Sequence record: LC680884.1
DNA: 64,000 nt
Direction: 5' to 3' (one strand)
In this document: positions 45,376-53,533 of the stretch, in pieces
How the letters are laid out: each line of letters opens with the position of its first letter
Position numbering within the stretch: the first letter of the stretch is position 1
The notes under the pieces: model-generated
What the model was told of the DNA's origin: nothing
The model's database searches: none
The model's input: only the letters and a program-made list of their open reading frames with translations
Position numbers and translations under genes: made by a program

Positions 45376-48300
45376 TTGTTTTATCTTGATAATCTCAAGG
45401 AATTGAGAGTGTACTCTAATATAAAACTTTCATCCATTAAAAAAAGGAAAAATGACCGTAATTCAAATTTGATTTTCTTTTCAGGAAATAATCAAAGTGA
45501 AATATTTGATTTTATTAATTCTAATATATTCAGTCCTTCTTTTTTTAGAGGAGTATATATTCCAAGAGCATTCAATACTGTTCAAAAGAATAAAAGAATT
45601 ATTGTAGATCAAAAGAAATATTATGATGAGGTAAAAGCAAAATGCTCCAGTATTATTTATACTAAACGTGCTTTAACTAATTATAATGATCTTAACTTGA
45701 TCTATGATATTACAAATGAGCATCTTGAGAATGAAGTAGAGATTAAAGTTCGTGGAAGAAAACGAGTTGAAATGTATTTTGAGTTTCTTATATCTAAAAT
45801 TAAAGAGGGCGCATCATATGAGAATAAAGCAGTAGCAATTCCTGTTCCTGACAATGTTCTTGATCCATCATTCTTTGACTTAAATAATGCAAGAACACCT
45901 TTTGCTTATATCTATATGGCAATTAAAAGAAAGTTGTTAACAGAGGAACAGAAGAAAGAGCTTAAGAATGTAGACTTTATTTTTTATACTACAGTTAATA
46001 ATACATTTATTAAATTCAATATTAATGATGAACTTTCTAATCTTCTTGCAAATAGATTCCTTAATGCATTAAATATTCTTATTAAAACAGCAAATCATCA
46101 GAGGACTAATAATGATGAAAAACCTTTAGGTAAAGAAGATGCAACTCAAGAAACAGAAAACAAGAGAGATGCATTAGTAAAAGAAAAATCTGAAAAAGTT
46201 AAAGAAAAATTATTAAGTAATTTCCAAATTGATGGAAATACAAAATTATCCAGTAGTGCAATTGAAGTTACTGATAAGATTGGTGATGATATTGAAAAAG
46301 CTATTGATTCAAGTGATGAAGATATTCTTGATAAAAGTGAAGATGAAATCATTGATATCTTAAATAACAGTAAGGAATTAAAAGCTGATGTTTCAACTCT
46401 TAAAGAGCTTCAGTCTACTGGTGGAGATGAAATTAAACAGAGAAAGACTCTTGAACGCCTAAAAGAAAAACAAAAACAAGTTACTCTTGATGATATTAAT
46501 ATTCAAGATATTATTGATGATTTTAAATCAACAAGTATTGACCGAAAGCCAATTACCAATACAAATGTTATTCAAGAAGAAACTAGATATTCAAATCTTA
46601 AAGATTTTGATATGAGCTACTTTGAGAAACAGATGAAAAAAGACTTAGTTGCAGTTCTTTCATCATTTAATGGAGATAGCGATGTTAAATTATTTGTAAG
46701 TGATATTAAAACAGAAGACACATCTACTGATTTATCAAAGAAATTAACTTACACTGTTACTTTCCAAGATGATCGTAATGTAAAGCATACTGTTAAATTT
46801 GATTATCCTATTATCAGAGATGGTAGGTTTATGAATATTAATGGTGGTAAAAAATTAATTCTTAAGCAAATTCTATCTTTACCCATTGTAAAAACAAAAC
46901 CTGATGAAGTTCAGATTACTACTAACTACAATAAGTTTTTTGTCATGCGCTTTGGTTCTAAGCTATCTCATAAAACTGAGAAACTTAAGAAGCTTTTTGG
47001 TATGGATCTAAATGAATTTAAAGTATCAGGTAAGAAGTTTAATTATCGTCTAGGTAACGCTCTAACAATTAATGAGGGATATGAAACAACTCTTGAATAT
47101 AATGAAATCTCTTCCTTCCTTCTAAGCTTAGAGAATGATGAATATAAACTTATGTTCAGTCAAAAAGAAGTAGAAGATTTATTGAAAAGTGATCTTGATA
47201 ATATGGCTAAGCTTGCTAAGATTAATATTGATGATAAACAATTCTTACCAATCGGTCATACAAAAGATAATGAAAATGTTATTGCTCTTAAGCGTTCAAG
47301 TAAAAGAGTTTATCTGATTAATAATAAGAAACAAGAAAATACTGATATGAGTCTTTCAGAACTCATTATTAAAGTTGTTGTTACTTCACTTAGTGAGGAA
47401 GCTTATAAAAAATTATCTTCTTTAAGTAATTCTAAGTCTCTAGCATATAACCGAGTTCGTATTAATAATAGAATGATTCCTTTAGTGGTTCTTCTTGGAT
47501 ATGAATTAGGATTAGAAGATTTATTAGAAAGATATAATATTGAATATAGCTTTGATACTAAGAATAAGAGAATTACAATTGATGATGACTATGATAAGAT
47601 CCGTTTTAAAGATGGATACCTATATTATAATAATTCTTTATTGAGAAATTCCTTATTATTAAGTGGTCTAAGTACTATGGCTACTGAAGAGTATACATTT
47701 GAAGAAATGAACTCTAAAGATCCTTATATTGAAACTTTCTATGAGATGTTTGGTAGCAGAAATATGGGTAAAGGTCTCCATAATACTCTATCTCTAATGG
47801 TTGATCCTATCACATTAGATGTACTGAAACAGTTAGAATTACCTGAGAATATCTATGACATATTGTTGTATGCGAATACCTTATTGGAAGATATGAGCTA
47901 TAGTCCACTGAATGATATGAATTCATATCGAATCCGTGGTACTGAGCAAGTAAACGCCTACTTGTATAAAATCTTGGCAGATTCATTTAAAACGTATAAG
48001 GATACACTGAAAGCTGGTAATCCTATTAAGATGTCTGTTCCACAGGATATTCTATTAAAGACATTAATGAATTCACCTACTGTCGATGAATATAGTGTCC
48101 TTAACCCTTCTTTGGAAATTGAAAAGGGTGGTGCGGCTACTTACAAGGGGCTTTCAGGAAGGAACTTGGATTAAAGTGTTTTAGTCCAATTAAAACCTCT
48201 TTAACTGCTGGAAAACCCTTAGAGCCTTTAATACCAAATCTATATGGAAACATAATAGATGGCTGAATATAACAATTCAGGTATGGTAAAAATTTAAAGG

Positions 48301-51300
48301 ATTGGGTAATCATAAGCAACCAAGTACCTAAGTTACAAATTATTTGTAATAAGGTAAAGGTTCAACGACTATCGAAACCACTCTAACAGATCATTACAAT
48401 AATGCTAGTTAGTGGAAGGGAGTAGAGTACAGTCTAAGCGATTGAGGCTGGAAATGGGAGGCACTTTTAAGTGATGATATAGTCTCGTCTCTAGGGAAAC
48501 TTAGAGCAGTTCTAAGGAACGGTATAGGTGTAGCGAACCTATATGAAGGAAAACGGATGCTTATACAACTGATATTCGGGCTTATGACCCTAGTATGCGT
48601 GGAATCATGGCAATGTCAACACCCGACTCGGATTGAATTATTATAATTCTTGAATTCCCAGACAAGATTTATAATAGTCCCTTATAATAGAAATATTATA
48701 AGTAAACCTCTTTAACTGCTGGAAAATCCTTTAAGGACAATCAGCATCCAAGACTCATTAGAGTAAGGTTCAACGACTATCGAAACCACTCTAACAGATC
48801 GTTGTGATAACGCTAGTTAGAAGGAAGGGAGTAGAGTACAACTCAAGCGATTGGAGTTGGAAATGGGAGGCATCCTAATAGGATGATGATATAGTCTCAT
48901 CTTCATGGTAACATGAAGCAGTTCATAAGAGAACGCATTAGATGTAGCGAATCTAGTGGAAGATAATGAAAGTTGGGGTGAATTAAACTGCCCCCTTATA
49001 TAGTGATATATAATGATAAAATCTCTCTAACTACGGGAAACTCCTAATAATAGGACAATCCGTATCGAAGACTCTCGTTAAATATATATTATAATAGTAG
49101 TAAGTTAAAAAGGAGAGCTACTATTATGGAAAAAAATAAAATAATATATCTAAAAGAACAAAAATTATGGAGAGTAAGTTTCTATAATAAAGAAAAGAAA
49201 TCAAATTCCCTTGCACATTATTCAGAAGTTTTATATGGAGATTATAGTGAGCGTATAGCTATGAAAACATTAAAAGAAGGAAAAAGAGCATATAATTTTA
49301 TTGAAGTATTAGATGATCATGCATTATTAGTTACTTTTTCAAAAACATATGGTATCGTAAAATCTCAAATTGATATTGAAGATATTGATAAAATAAATAA
49401 GCATGTTTGGAGAGCTATCTGGTCTAAAAGAAATAATTCATTTTATATTTCAAGTAATTCAGGTGGAAAGCTTCATAGATACCTAATGGATATTAAAGAT
49501 AATAATAATGTAATTGATCATATAGATAGAAATAGTTTAAATAATAGAAAAAGTAATTTGCGTGAGGTTTCTCAAATGATGAATAATAGAAATACATCAC
49601 TAAGAAACGATAATACTTCTGGAATTAAAGGAATAAGATATTCTAAAAAGAAAAATAGATGGGAATCTGAAATCCGTGTTAATCATAAAAAATTTATTAA
49701 AACATTTGCAGTTAATAAATATGGTTTTGAAAAAGCTAAAGAACTAGCAATTACTTTTAGAAAAGAAATTGCTGAGAAAAACGGTTTTATAAATTATTTT
49801 TAATTATAACGAGAGTAACGTTCAACGACTATCCTTTAGTGGTTAACACACAATAGGAGTACGGCTCAAGCGATTGGAGTGGGTGAGAATCCCTTAAATG
49901 GAAATGGGAGATATCTAGTCATCTCCTTTCTTTTTTTTTGACTAGATAAAGATATAGTCTCATCTCTATGGTAACATAGAGCAGTTCATAAGAGAACGGT
50001 ATAGGTGTAGCGAACCTATATGAAGGTAATGGGTTAGACAGTTAACTTTTGATCCAGCATTCAAAAACACACGAGGATTCTTAGACACCAATCCTAATAC
50101 AAAAAATAATACGACAAATATCTATGGTCCGGCAGAGTTATTAAACTCCTTTACTGCTCGTCATGCCGACCCACCGCGCGTTGGAATGCAAACAACGCAG
50201 CAAAAGCATGATTCGTGCCTAGTAGTAGTAATATTGCTAGCAAAACCCTTTAACTGCTGGAAAATCCTAAAGCCTTTAGTACCAAAGTGTAACAATCTAA
50301 AGGATATATGGACAATCAGCATCCAAGCATTGTTATAAATAACAATGAAGGTTCAACGACTATCCGAAAGCAATCTTAGGATTGTGAGTAGCGGTGAAAT
50401 TCCGCAATAGGAGTACGGCTCAAGCGATTGGAGTGGGTGAGAATCCCTTAAATGGAAATGGGGGTTATCCTTAATAGATAAGGATAGTGATATAGTCTCG
50501 TCTCTATAGAAATATAGAGCAGTTCATAAGAGAACGCATTAGACGTAGCGAATCTAATGGAAGTTAACGATCATTCCTACCACAAAGCAATCTAAACCTC
50601 TATTTGGTAGTGGTGTAGAGAAGACTGTCGCTTACATTCTAAGTGACGACTTTGTGTTTAGAGCAAAAAAAGATGGAGTTCTAGAGTCCATAGATGAAGA
50701 ACATGAGTTAGCTGTCGTTCGTTATAATGATGGTAAGAAAGACGTCATTGATCTCTCCGAGCATATGAGTAAGAACAGTAATGGTGGTTTCTATATTTCC
50801 AATCGTAAAGAACTCATTATCAAAGTAGGAGAGAAATTCAAAAAAGATGATATCCTAGCGAAGAATCCAAGTTATTTCCTTGGCGATAAGAAAGATGATA
50901 TCACGTATACTACAGGGAAGCTTTGTAAAGTAGCACTAGCAAGCGCAGATTACACATATGAAGATAGTAGTATTATCACAGAAAGCTTATCTCAAGACCT
51001 ATCTACTAAGATTACTATGAAGAAAGAACTTGCTCTTGGAGTTAACTCAAACATTGACTTTATTGTTAAGAAAGGCGATATGGTTAAAACTGGTGATCCA
51101 CTGATTATCTTTGAAAACTCTTTTGAAGATAAATCACTCAACCAACTCTTAGATAAACTAGGAGATGACTTTAATGAGACTATTAATGAGTTATCTAAGA
51201 ACAAAGTAAGTTCTAAATATACTGGTAAGATTGTAGATGTTGTAATGTACTACAATAAAGATATCAGTGAGTTTTCTCCTTCAGTACAAAAGATTCTGAA

Positions 51301-51700
51301 GAACTATATTAAAGATAGTAAGAAGAAAGAAGATAAGATTAAGTCTGTTACTAATGATCTGACTTCTGTTAATCTTAAACCTATTCAAAAGCAATCAGGT
51401 GAGAAAATTAAAGGTACTGAGGTAGATGGACTACTCATTGAGATTTATATTGAGTATGATGATGAACTTGGTATTGGAGATAAGATTACGTATTATACAG
51501 CACTTAAAACAATTGTATCTGATGTTATTCCTAAAGATCAAGAGCCTTTTAGTGAGAATGATCCAGATGAGAATATTGAAGCCATTATGAGTCCATTAAG
51601 TATCGTTTCACGCATGACCGTTGATATTTACAATGCATTGTATTTAAATAAAGCTTTAGTTCATCTTAAGAGAGAAATTGGTAAAATATATTCAGAATAA
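45376..51700 (+). CDS. Spliced RNA polymerase beta-like subunit, probably virion RNAP, 1397 aa; exons 45376-48171, 48556-48633, 48969-48979, 50032-50209, 50570-51700
   Basis: Beta motifs FMNINGGKKLILKQ, STPDSD|KVGV|VRQL (bacterial TPEGPNIGL), HADPPRVGMQTTQQKH|IIP...GSGVE, GDKITY...SPLSIVSRM. Exons total 4194 nt in one frame. The late promoter suggests the packaged RNAP. Confidence 0.9.
48172..48555 (+). mobile_element. Group I intron 1 (384 nt)
   Basis: P1 UUGGAU/GUCCAA; AACUGCUGGAA, GUUCAACGACUA, GAUAUAGUC; terminal G. Confidence 0.9.
48634..48968 (+). mobile_element. Group I intron 2 (335 nt)
   Basis: P1 GGAU/GUCC; core elements present; terminal G; frame restored. Confidence 0.88.
49080..49092 (+). 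promoter_or_regulatory. Intron-internal putative early promoter AAATATATATTAT
   Basis: Exact 13-mer 33 nt upstream of the endonuclease ATG. Confidence 0.7.
49126..49803 (+). CDS. Intron-encoded HNH endonuclease with AP2 DNA-binding domain
   Basis: LHRYLM...VIDHIDRNSLNNRKSNLREV...NNRN (HNH) then NTSGIKGI...RWESEI...F...KYG.E.A..LA (AP2). Confidence 0.9.
   Translation: MEKNKIIYLKEQKLWRVSFYNKEKKSNSLAHYSEVLYGDYSERIAMKTLKEGKRAYNFIEVLDDHALLVTFSKTYGIVKSQIDIEDIDKINKHVWRAIWSKRNNSFYISSNSGGKLHRYLMDIKDNNNVIDHIDRNSLNNRKSNLREVSQMMNNRNTSLRNDNTSGIKGIRYSKKKNRWESEIRVNHKKFIKTFAVNKYGFEKAKELAITFRKEIAEKNGFINYF
50210..50569 (+). mobile_element. Group I intron 4 (360 nt)
   Basis: P1 GCAU/GUGC; core elements; terminal G; frame restored into exon 5. 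Confidence 0.9.
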
Positions 51701-51715
51701 TTTTCTTTGATAAAC

Positions 51716-51759
51716 AAATTGGATTTCAACTAAACAAAATAATAGTTGAAATCCAATTT
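51716..51759 (+). promoter_or_regulatory. 16-bp palindrome with late promoter AACA-AAATAA-TA (51733-51744) in its loop
   Basis: AAATTGGATTTCAACT / AGTTGAAATCCAATTT flanking the motif. Confidence 0.6.
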
Positions 51760-51769
51760 TATATAAAGG

Positions 51770-53533
51770 ATGATTGTTTTGCCTAAAAAGACTACTGAAA
51801 TGTTTATTAAAGAAGTGTATGATTTAGTAGGAGATGAATATACTGTATTAGGAGAATATACTGGAACTAATAATAAAATAAAAATGAAACATGAAAAGTG
51901 CAGTCATGAATACTATGTCTCACCAAATGGCTTTTTAAATGCAGGTAATAGATGTCCTTTACATAAATCAGAGAGAATATCTAAAAGAAAAAATAAGACT
52001 ACTGAAATGTTTATTAAAGAAGTGTATGATTTAGTAGGAGATGAATATACTGTATTAGGAGAATATATTAATAGTTCTAAACTAGTATTACTTAGACATA
52101 ACATCTGTAATAAGGAGTTTAAAAAAAGACCTAATGACTTTCTCAGTAAGGGTTCAAGATGTCCTGATTGTACTAAGAAACTAATAAAAAGGAAAAAGAC
52201 AAAGACTACTGAAATGTTTATTAAAGAAGTGTATGATTTAGTAGGAGATGAATATACTGTATTAGGAGAATATATTAGCTCTCAAGATAAAATTGAGATG
52301 AGACACAATACTAGTGATTCTCATAATTTCTTTATTACACCAACTAATTTCCTAAAAAGAAAAAGGTGTAATATATGTAATAAAAATCCAAAAAATAAAG
52401 GATCTAATGGTTTTAAAGAAGATTTTTATAGAATATTTAATAGTAATGATTATACAATTAAGAGTAGATATATTAATAATAAAACTCCAATAGTTATTGA
52501 GCATTCATGTGGCTATTCTTGGGAGGTTAGACCGGTCGATATTTTACATGGTAATTCAAGAGGTAAAAAAGTTAAAAGAGATTGTCCTAGATGTCAACTA
52601 AAGAAACATAATTCAAAAGATGAGATTGAATTATATGATTATATTAAACAAATTCTCCCCAATAGCACTAATGTAATTCTATCAGACAGAAAAATACTTG
52701 AAGGTTTAGAACTGGATATTTATATACCTTCAAAGAAAATAGCAATTGAATATAACGGTTTATATTGGCATGGTGAATCTCAAGGAAAAGATAGAAACTA
52801 CCATTTAAATAAATTGAAAAAATGTAATGAAAAGGGTATAAGATTAATTCATTTATTTGAGAATGAGTGGATTGATAATAAAGAACTTATAAAGGGAAAG
52901 ATAAAACATATTTTAGGTTTAAATAATGGAGAAAAAATATATGCTAGAAAATGTTATATAGAAGAAATTCAGAATAATGTGAAAAGAGATTTTTTAGATA
53001 AAAATCATATTCAAGGATCTGATAACTCTACTATTAAACTGGGACTATGGTATCCAAGGAATGAGGGTGATGAGTTAGTAGCAGTAATGACATTCTGTAA
53101 ACCTAGAGTTAGCTTAGGGCAAAAAGGGAATAAATATGACTATGAATTAAGTAGATTTGCTACAGAAAGAGACTATAATGTAATAGGTAGTTTTGGAAAA
53201 TTATTCAGTTATTTTAAAAAGAATTATGATTGGAATAAAATCATAACATATGCTGATTTAAGATGGTCAGAAGGAAATGTATATCATAAAAATAGCTTTC
53301 ACTTTATGCATAACTCTCAGCCAAATTATTGGTATTTTAATAAAAATAAATTGAGTCTTTCACATAGATACAACTATAGAAAACAAAGATTAAAAGAATT
53401 ATTTCCAGAAATTTATAGTAATGATAAAACAGAAATTCAAATTATGAGAGAAGCTGGTTATGATAGAATTTGGGATTGTGGAAATTTAGTCTTTGAGTAT
53501 ACAAAAAAAAAAATAAAGGATAGAGATATTTAG
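51770..53533 (+). CDS. Free-standing putative homing endonuclease: Zn-finger repeats, Vsr/PD-(D/E)xK-like domain and Hef-like C-terminal region
   Basis: Repeated KTTEMFIKEVYDLVGDEYTVLGEY...H..C units; LELDIYIPSKKIAIEYNGLYWH; KIYARKC...NHIQG...TYADLRWS...RIWDCG. Confidence 0.7.
   Translation: MIVLPKKTTEMFIKEVYDLVGDEYTVLGEYTGTNNKIKMKHEKCSHEYYVSPNGFLNAGNRCPLHKSERISKRKNKTTEMFIKEVYDLVGDEYTVLGEYINSSKLVLLRHNICNKEFKKRPNDFLSKGSRCPDCTKKLIKRKKTKTTEMFIKEVYDLVGDEYTVLGEYISSQDKIEMRHNTSDSHNFFITPTNFLKRKRCNICNKNPKNKGSNGFKEDFYRIFNSNDYTIKSRYINNKTPIVIEHSCGYSWEVRPVDILHGNSRGKKVKRDCPRCQLKKHNSKDEIELYDYIKQILPNSTNVILSDRKILEGLELDIYIPSKKIAIEYNGLYWHGESQGKDRNYHLNKLKKCNEKGIRLIHLFENEWIDNKELIKGKIKHILGLNNGEKIYARKCYIEEIQNNVKRDFLDKNHIQGSDNSTIKLGLWYPRNEGDELVAVMTFCKPRVSLGQKGNKYDYELSRFATERDYNVIGSFGKLFSYFKKNYDWNKIITYADLRWSEGNVYHKNSFHFMHNSQPNYWYFNKNKLSLSHRYNYRKQRLKELFPEIYSNDKTEIQIMREAGYDRIWDCGNLVFEYTKKKIKDRDI
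51788..52274 (+). repeat. Three identical 73-bp intragenic repeats at exact 207-bp spacing (51788, 51995, 52202)
   Basis: AAGACTACTGAAATG...GGAGAATATA compared base by base; 69-aa period. Confidence 0.9.

Follow-up and report, generated by a model that had tools for sequence, protein, structure and literature searches.

A start-codon hairpin overlapping an early promoter at an intron endonuclease gene of Bacillus phage PBS1: a predicted translational gate with reversed timing

In phage T4, the homing endonuclease I-TevI is encoded in a peripheral loop (P6a) of the td group I intron, and its ribosome site lies in a hairpin that contains its promoter. Transcription from this internal promoter starts within or after the 5′ arm, such that the inhibitory stem forms on read-through RNA only, and the end of the open reading frame (ORF) abuts ribozyme structure. 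The hairpin keeps ribosomes out of the intron core and thereby protects splicing (PMC2988022). The same arrangement is found at I-TevII, I-TevIII, segB, and Aeh1 mobE. Here, we analyze a window of 64,000 nucleotides (nt) from record LC680884.1 (the whole stretch of DNA under study), in which the gene for the beta subunit of the virion RNA polymerase is interrupted by a group I intron that houses an HNH-AP2 endonuclease gene. The window belongs to Bacillus phage PBS1 (identical to LC680884.1 over the searched 3-kb stretch, with equal coordinates) and is 98.9% identical to phage AR9, in which the homologous genes are g190 (endonuclease) and g189 (polymerase). We predict that the endonuclease gene carries a translational gate of the I-TevI type that operates with reversed timing, a reading to which we assign a probability of about 60%.

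Two further systems are close in gene content. The AR9 gene g190 with its promoter P190 represents the same element: the protein is 100% identical, and the cassettes differ by one base in 831 nt (within the ORF, at 49713), with 49060-49140 identical. In the AR9 annotation, g189 is the N-terminal part of virion RNA polymerase beta, joined from six pieces, with g190 inside; AR9 has a fifth intron that PBS1 lacks. The AR9 transcriptome study (Lavysh et al. 2017, mBio, PMC5312081) published the P190 promoter, its transcription start site (TSS), and the presence of an early gene within a late-gene intron. Both the promoter of g190 and its reversed timing are thus already known. The second system is gp210 of phage PhiPA3 (Birkholz et al. 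2024, Science, PMC11620839), likewise an HNH endonuclease from a jumbo phage whose virion RNA polymerase beta gene encodes it within a group I intron; for gp210, competition and cleavage have been demonstrated (PMC11620839). PhiPA3 differs in phage lineage and host, and its insertion site appears to be different (exon translations read, unaligned); the text searched makes no mention of a promoter or of expression control for gp210 (PMC11620839). The T4 and PhiPA3 precedents had both been described correctly in the original prediction for this locus.

The PBS1 locus shares the general layout of td/I-TevI and departs from it in several respects. In PBS1, the internal promoter is early and the host gene late, and both polymerases are phage-encoded multisubunit enzymes. 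The PBS1 stem hides the AUG and the spacer rather than the Shine-Dalgarno sequence, and repression is predicted here. The nuclease is of the HNH-AP2 type, not GIY-YIG. The features that make up the proposed gate, with their positions in the window, are as follows.

49071..49079, + strand: 5′ strand of helix P6a, which closes the cassette loop; pairs with 49808-49816 with probability 0.92-0.998 (1091-nt fold)
49080..49092, + strand: early (virion RNA polymerase) promoter 13-mer AAATATATATTAT, an exact consensus match and the g190 promoter in PMC5312081
49090..49128, + strand: start-codon hairpin with arms 49090-49101 and 49117-49128; perfect core 49091-49100 with 49118-49127 (ViennaRNA fold)
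49099, + strand: mapped transcription start (A) with a 27-nt leader (AR9 Table S2: TSS 152042, untranslated region 27, class Primary; PBS1 identical here)
49126..49803, + strand: HNH-AP2 homing endonuclease ORF of 225 amino acids (aa), equal to AR9 g190 (Pfam AP2; 100% protein identity to AR9 g190)
49808..49816, + strand: 3′ strand of P6a (1091-nt fold), beginning 4 nt past the ORF stop codon

The original prediction held that the endonuclease has an early promoter of its own, active within the intron at a time opposite to that of the host gene. This claim stands. The AR9 early consensus comprises the 13-mer, then 6 nt, then the start (Lavysh et al. 2017, mBio, PMC5312081), and the PBS1 promoter matches the 13-mer exactly. 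Published differential RNA sequencing places the g190 TSS of AR9 inside the intron (PMC5312081), a primary 5′ end that corresponds to window position 49099. The start lies 6 nt past the 13-mer, and its base is A, not the usual G. The 13-mer has six exact copies in the window, and the whole genome holds 42 copies at one mismatch or fewer, 25 of them exact. At 5, 20, and 40 min, AR9 g190 reaches 291, 406, and 427 fragments per kilobase per million (FPKM), versus 0, 24, and 390 for g189 (Table S4, PMC5312081). This course implies that, at 40 min, most g190-containing RNA could be precursor or excised intron. In the same FPKM table, g190 is the sole homing endonuclease gene strongly expressed at 5 min.

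The sequence, folding, and genome comparisons were made as follows. The PBS1 genome was assembled from the window and four LC680884.1 stretches for genome-wide promoter and gene scans, and leaders were compared among 241 predicted PBS1 genes, all treated alike. Hairpins were folded with ViennaRNA, with z-scores against 200 shuffles, and the whole-intron context was a partition-function fold of 1091 nt. Opening energy refers to the stretch from the Shine-Dalgarno sequence to +5, folded with 40 upstream bases (read-through RNA) or from the TSS.

We find that the hairpin is predicted to form on read-through RNA and to be absent from the early transcript. Its core arms, ATAATAGTAG (49091-49100) and CTACTATTAT (49118-49127), are complementary at every position. 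The stem takes in the first two bases, A and U, of the start codon (ATG, 49126-49128), and the 17-nt loop contains the Shine-Dalgarno sequence AAAGGAG (49109-49115); a re-check of the sequence returned the same coordinates for 13-mer, arm, ATG, and loop as had first been given. The 10 perfect pairs, or 12 with two G-U ends, yield −11 kcal/mol (z −4.75), a value matched by none of the 200 shuffles. Within the 1091-nt intron fold, the hairpin forms alongside P6a with pair probabilities of 0.80-0.985, and the probability of being unpaired is 0.09 for the AUG and 0.81 for the Shine-Dalgarno sequence. Of the 10 core bases in the 5′ arm, eight precede the TSS, and RNA initiated there retains two; this RNA is unstructured (−1.8 kcal/mol, z +0.6). 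The calculated cost of opening the ribosome site is 14.4 kcal/mol for read-through RNA versus 2.6 kcal/mol for RNA from the TSS, the second-largest gap among the 241 genes. Two parts of the earlier proposal are therefore upheld: the early RNA lacks most of the 5′ arm, and computation and comparison support a hairpin that is confined to read-through RNA, where it covers the AUG (−11 versus −1.8 kcal/mol; 14.4 versus 2.6 kcal/mol). The third part, translational silencing, we infer from these values.

The hairpin and the ORF occupy a defined place in the ribozyme. The cassette (49080-49808) forms the terminal loop of P6a, a helix named by Rfam alignment of the sibling intron 2, and the 13-mer starts at the first base past the P6a 5′ strand. 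The encoded protein has an AP2 domain (Pfam PF00847, 52.2 bits versus a cut-off of 33.3). A putative HNH motif scores 22.7 bits against Pfam HNH_3, just below the cut-off of 24.8, and the HNH core residues HR, DHIDR, NN, N, and LR are invariant in relatives that are 63% and 51% identical. Close relatives of the nuclease were found by a word-based protein search; pattern scans of viral and metagenome contigs yielded none. A search of solved structures returned weak AP2 matches only.

We propose the following mechanism. Within loop L6a of the intron, the cassette would act as an early transcription unit complete in itself. Once injected, the virion RNA polymerase starts at 49099 early in infection and produces an unstructured 27-nt leader with a good Shine-Dalgarno sequence, from which the HNH-AP2 endonuclease would be translated within minutes of infection. 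Late in infection, the ORF is also present on the primary transcript of the polymerase beta gene, made from a late promoter ~3.7 kb upstream. This RNA carries the 5′ arm, which consists of the last promoter bases and the spacer before the start site, and would fold a 10- to 12-bp hairpin burying the AUG and the 8 preceding bases. The cost of opening would rise by ~12 kcal/mol, which should silence translation.

The probable benefit would be as in T4 I-TevI: ribosomes would be kept from a stop codon that lies 4 nt off P6a, the ribozyme would stay intact, and the late mRNA would splice. Despite the reversed order of expression, the conflict is the same as in T4, because the late precursor carries a translatable ORF that ends at P6a. 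We consider splicing protection the most likely benefit of the hairpin; a second possible benefit would be to limit the nuclease to the first minutes of infection. The original prediction had instead emphasized the early cutting, before replication, of a competitor’s intron-less polymerase gene. Our analysis lends this purpose no support; it has a precedent in PhiPA3 gp210 and would be compatible with the strong expression at 5 min. The splicing-protection rationale known from T4 explains the hairpin at least as well. Natural intron-less alleles of the insertion site do exist: an uninterrupted homolog (L011) has no intron there, and phage Goe21 carries a neighboring intron instead. Cleavage substrates would thus be available.

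With the promoter and timing already known, the new part is a concrete and testable model that reconciles the early nuclease gene with the late ribozyme. If true, the model extends the promoter-in-hairpin gate of T4 to a Bacillus jumbo phage with two polymerases of its own and indicates that such a gate can run in the opposite temporal direction.

One rival explanation treats the inverted repeat as fortuitous: sequence rich in A-T next to a promoter of like composition would have produced it by chance, and expression would be unaffected. Perfect hairpins of at least 10 bp are indeed frequent in the 28%-GC window, which holds 31 where ~8 were estimated by chance. Stems of this length placed on a start codon are far fewer, occurring in 4 of the 241 predicted genes with the g190 homolog included, and at least two of them (the g190 and g108 homologs) have an early promoter in the 5′ arm. 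The layout also agrees with a known intron-endonuclease mechanism. Further evidence comes from L012, a metagenomic contig whose nuclease is 62% identical, with an intron at the same site and an exact 13-mer at the same place. Between TSS and AUG, L012 has undergone ~5 edits, and it nonetheless forms a perfect stem of 10 bp, again reaching as far as the AU of the start codon, with an altered 3′ arm and a pairing register shifted by 3 nt. When an equal number of edits was introduced at random, a stem of at least 10 bp was retained in 2.9% of trials (p ~0.03). A chance origin of the repeat is, in our judgment, unlikely.

Several observations nevertheless weigh against a functional gate, the first two of which favor a chance repeat. 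By a looser accessibility measure, chance placement gives 13 of the 241 genes a comparable switch. In L012, the hairpin folds less strongly than in PBS1, at −8.5 kcal/mol, with a z-score of just −1.4. The other relatives, AR9, Internexus, and a PBS1-like contig (L014), are near-identical at the hairpin, so the covariation rests on one diverged sequence, with p ~0.03. The PBS1 stem is itself A-U rich and of moderate stability, and its Shine-Dalgarno sequence is exposed in the loop, which means that repression may be partial. Among early-promoter genes overall, gating is not enriched (Mann-Whitney p 0.44); the signal is limited to an early-promoter subclass with an upstream element. Finally, the hairpin may have been described before. 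PMC5312081 mentions neither a hairpin nor secondary structure, splicing, or translational control, and the 2016 AR9 genome paper (Virology), which was outside our comparison, may describe the hairpin. The word hairpin is absent from a 2020 review of jumbo-phage RNA polymerases and from a 2025 paper on phage group II introns.

The hairpin might instead serve the RNA itself, either as a processing or stability site of the precursor or excised intron (e.g., an RNase III–type cut parting the ORF from the ribozyme) or as a folding aid that shields the intron core from the 700-nt insert. Its position is suited to such a role, as it lies 10 nt past the 5′ strand of P6a, and the full-length fold contains both helices. 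In short context, an alternative fold (−16.6 kcal/mol) has the Shine-Dalgarno sequence paired to the 5′ strand of P6a and the AUG to the 3′ strand of P4, and a local hairpin could thus prevent misfolding. However, PBS1 and L012 differ in register, and yet each stem stops precisely at the start codon, which suggests that the AUG is what the stem is aimed at. We regard a processing or folding role as less probable still than a chance repeat.

It is also conceivable that the repeat acts as DNA, as an operator for a regulator that is possibly the endonuclease itself. I-TevI sets a precedent, since it autorepresses at an operator that overlaps its promoter, and the arms of the PBS1 repeat bracket the start site and leader. 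An I-TevI–like operator should resemble the homing site; comparing 49060-49135 with the exon flanks of the insertion site, we found none above shuffled controls, the best match being 9/16 against null means of 9.6-10.4. None of the other early promoters shares the arm sequence, and L012 has changed only the 3′ arm while keeping the RNA pairing. An operator is very improbable on this evidence.

The prediction of a translational gate at g190 gains from two examples of this design, both much stronger, elsewhere in the genome. The homolog of the early gene g108 (PBS1 115020-115100, − strand) has a perfect 17-bp stem over its Shine-Dalgarno sequence and AUG, with the promoter as the 5′ arm (−20.8 versus −2.5 kcal/mol). 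The homolog of the early gene g047 (PBS1 163340-163480, − strand) has a 22-bp perfect stem of the same layout, with an opening energy of 24.3 versus 2.0 kcal/mol. In both, transcripts that begin at the mapped start lack structure. Compared with Goe21 and Internexus, the g047 stem differs at one position, where pairing is kept (G-U versus A-U). PBS1 thus builds leaders with a promoter in the hairpin, which makes a functional stem at g190 more likely. The g047 and g108 homologs follow the design of the hairpin-gated T4 late genes soc, e, 25, 26, and 39, in which only a shorter transcript exposes the ribosome site. The gated genes of PBS1 differ in being early or “pre-early,” and their gates would oppose later or upstream read-through. 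As a lead, then, three PBS1 early genes have a ribosome-site hairpin whose 5′ arm is drawn wholly or partly from their own promoter region.

A second lead concerns the promoters themselves. The features relevant to it, and to the end of the early transcript, are as follows.

49060..49069, + strand: upstream element CCGTATCGAA, with its CGTAT core 19 nt before the 13-mer; overlaps the P4 3′ strand and the 5′ side of P6 (Rfam alignment, intron 2)
61455 (−), 84009 (−), 105911 (+), 115114 (−), 145779 (−), 163198 (−), 163450 (−), 202590 (+), and 251233 (−), PBS1 genome coordinates: other sites of the element (genome scan)
49906..49938, + strand: terminator-like hairpin with U-run, candidate end of the early transcript; arms 49906-49912 and 49921-49927 (consensus scan, fold)

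The element, CCGTATYRAA, is found at 10 early promoters, with the core 19 nt (once 18) before the 13-mer, and these account for 10 of the 16 CGTATYRAA matches in the genome. Genes that carry it have a median 5-min/20-min FPKM ratio of 1.16, versus 0.21 for the others (n = 10 and 28, p = 3e-5), and they include most of the published “pre-early” group. The presence of this upstream element at a fixed distance is predictive of an expression peak at 5 min among AR9 early genes. It is unmentioned in the AR9 transcriptome paper, and no significant Pfam match was obtained for the proteins behind the other element-bearing promoters. Both leads bear on promoter choice and timing by the poorly understood virion RNA polymerase, and on the deployment of polymerase-gene intron endonucleases in phage-phage competition. 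At g190, the element lies in ribozyme sequence whose P4 and P6 partner strands carry compensating changes. L012 reads CAGTAT, not CCGTAT, which makes it doubtful that the P4 sequence has been selected for a promoter role.

The terminator-like hairpin is a candidate for the site where early g190 RNA ends. What is inferred to be the 3′ strand of P3 serves as its 5′ arm, and the region 49906-49947, with hairpin and U-run, also overlaps an unusually long P8. Hairpin and long P8 are conserved in L012, with two compensatory P8 pairs, and are absent from the ORF-less introns 1, 2, and 4. The FPKM of g189 at 5 min, 0 as against 291 for g190, suggests that early transcripts end before exon 4. A switch between P3 and the terminator can be hypothesized from the strand homology, the conservation, and this zero value: the terminator would form only on RNA without the 5′ half of the ribozyme, and the late precursor would fold P3 and P8 and read through it. 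Plain secondary-structure thermodynamics does not support such a switch; the terminator pairs have a probability of 0.72 when the precursor is truncated and of 0.51 on early RNA, and no P3 is predicted. In its widest form, the idea is that intron 3, which holds the cassette, is a complete immediate-early unit whose signals are shared with the ribozyme (the element in P4/P6, the promoter as gate arm, and a P3-overlapping terminator), and that CCGTAT marks a “pre-early” promoter subclass, several members of which are built as gates. We offer this only tentatively and hold it to be doubtful.

Other relatives retain the hairpin to different degrees. Internexus keeps the stem despite loss of the ORF. 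L014, a PBS1-like contig of bacterial genome assembly GCA_003052465.1, keeps both cassette (1438-2115) and stem, with one change in the loop. L013, from a distant phage (41% identical in the polymerase exon), has an intron at the same site without the 13-mer. It has instead a match to the late consensus (AACA-6N-TA) that falls in the 5′ arm of a hairpin of 8 bp, directly next to the Shine-Dalgarno sequence of the homologous ORF; the late-consensus motif is short, so this parallel is no more than suggestive.

These relatives also record the fate of cassette and intron. The Internexus cassette (L003:3560-3680) is decayed, with the ORF cut to ~5 codons and the 13-mer 2 nt shorter, while hairpin and intron are intact, which fits the loss phase of a homing cycle. 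In L014, the ORF is split into 134- and 75-aa pieces, and intron 2 is missing. Other intron ORFs of the polymerase gene, of 345 aa in Goe21 (L004:2420-2470) and 369 aa in Internexus (L003:4240-4280), have upstream late-consensus matches (AACA-6N-TA) instead of the early 13-mer.

The virion RNA polymerase beta gene of PBS1 contains four group I introns, and L011, which is 63% identical, reads through all four sites. Exons were read and compared singly, and the joints were judged without a joined sequence. The structure of the gene is as follows.

45376..48171, + strand: exon 1, virion RNA polymerase beta (N-terminal), homolog of AR9 g189, a late gene (AR9 annotation, ORF; end set by the intron-less allele of Goe21 and by uninterrupted L011)
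48172..48555, + strand: group I intron 1 (Rfam RF00028, 65.3 bits; missing in Goe21)
48556..48633, + strand: exon 2 (reading frame; uninterrupted homolog L011)
48634..48968, + strand: group I intron 2, ORF-less (Rfam, 102.4 bits; missing in L012 and L014)
48969..48979, + strand: exon 3, an 11-nt micro-exon (frame; comparison with Goe21, L011, L012, and L014)
48980..50031, + strand: group I intron 3, with the endonuclease cassette in loop L6a (homology to sibling introns 2 and 4; Rfam 51.7 bits on the 3′ half)
50032..50209, + strand: exon 4 (frame; L011)
50210..50569, + strand: group I intron 4 (Rfam, 81.5 bits)
50570..51700, + strand: exon 5 (frame; comparison with relatives including L011)

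Intron 3 is bordered by a U before the 5′ splice site and ends in G, and the exon translations around it, taken one at a time, match L011, such that the host frame is restored. Its 3′ half scores 51.7 bits against RF00028 (threshold 50) in a scan of the whole window and is unlisted in a narrower scan. Its 5′ half aligns to the sibling introns, with compensated changes in P4 and P6.

The region around intron 3 is a crowded target for insertion. Three distinct group I insertion sites lie within 11 nt: that of PBS1 intron 2, that of the Goe21 intron (+5 nt), and that of PBS1 intron 3 (+6 nt further on). PBS1 keeps an 11-nt exon there. Goe21 and PBS1 differ at 10 positions, all synonymous, in nine codons around the intron 3 site, in a setting where the flanks are ~95% identical; this cluster could be a co-conversion tract or reflect target-site divergence. 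In the last exon, AR9 (L001:6785-7086) and Internexus (L003:5823-6124) have an extra insertion of ~300 nt at 50790/50792, presumably the fifth group I intron, which is absent from PBS1.

Downstream of the polymerase gene lies a Hef-like homing endonuclease gene, the homolog of AR9 g188. Its mapped late start (51744) falls inside a 17-bp hairpin (window 51716-51770) that, with its extension, folds at −23 kcal/mol and is followed by a U-run, so that it resembles a terminator for the polymerase transcript. In its extended form, the stem also pairs the AAAGGA that precedes the ATG of the endonuclease gene.

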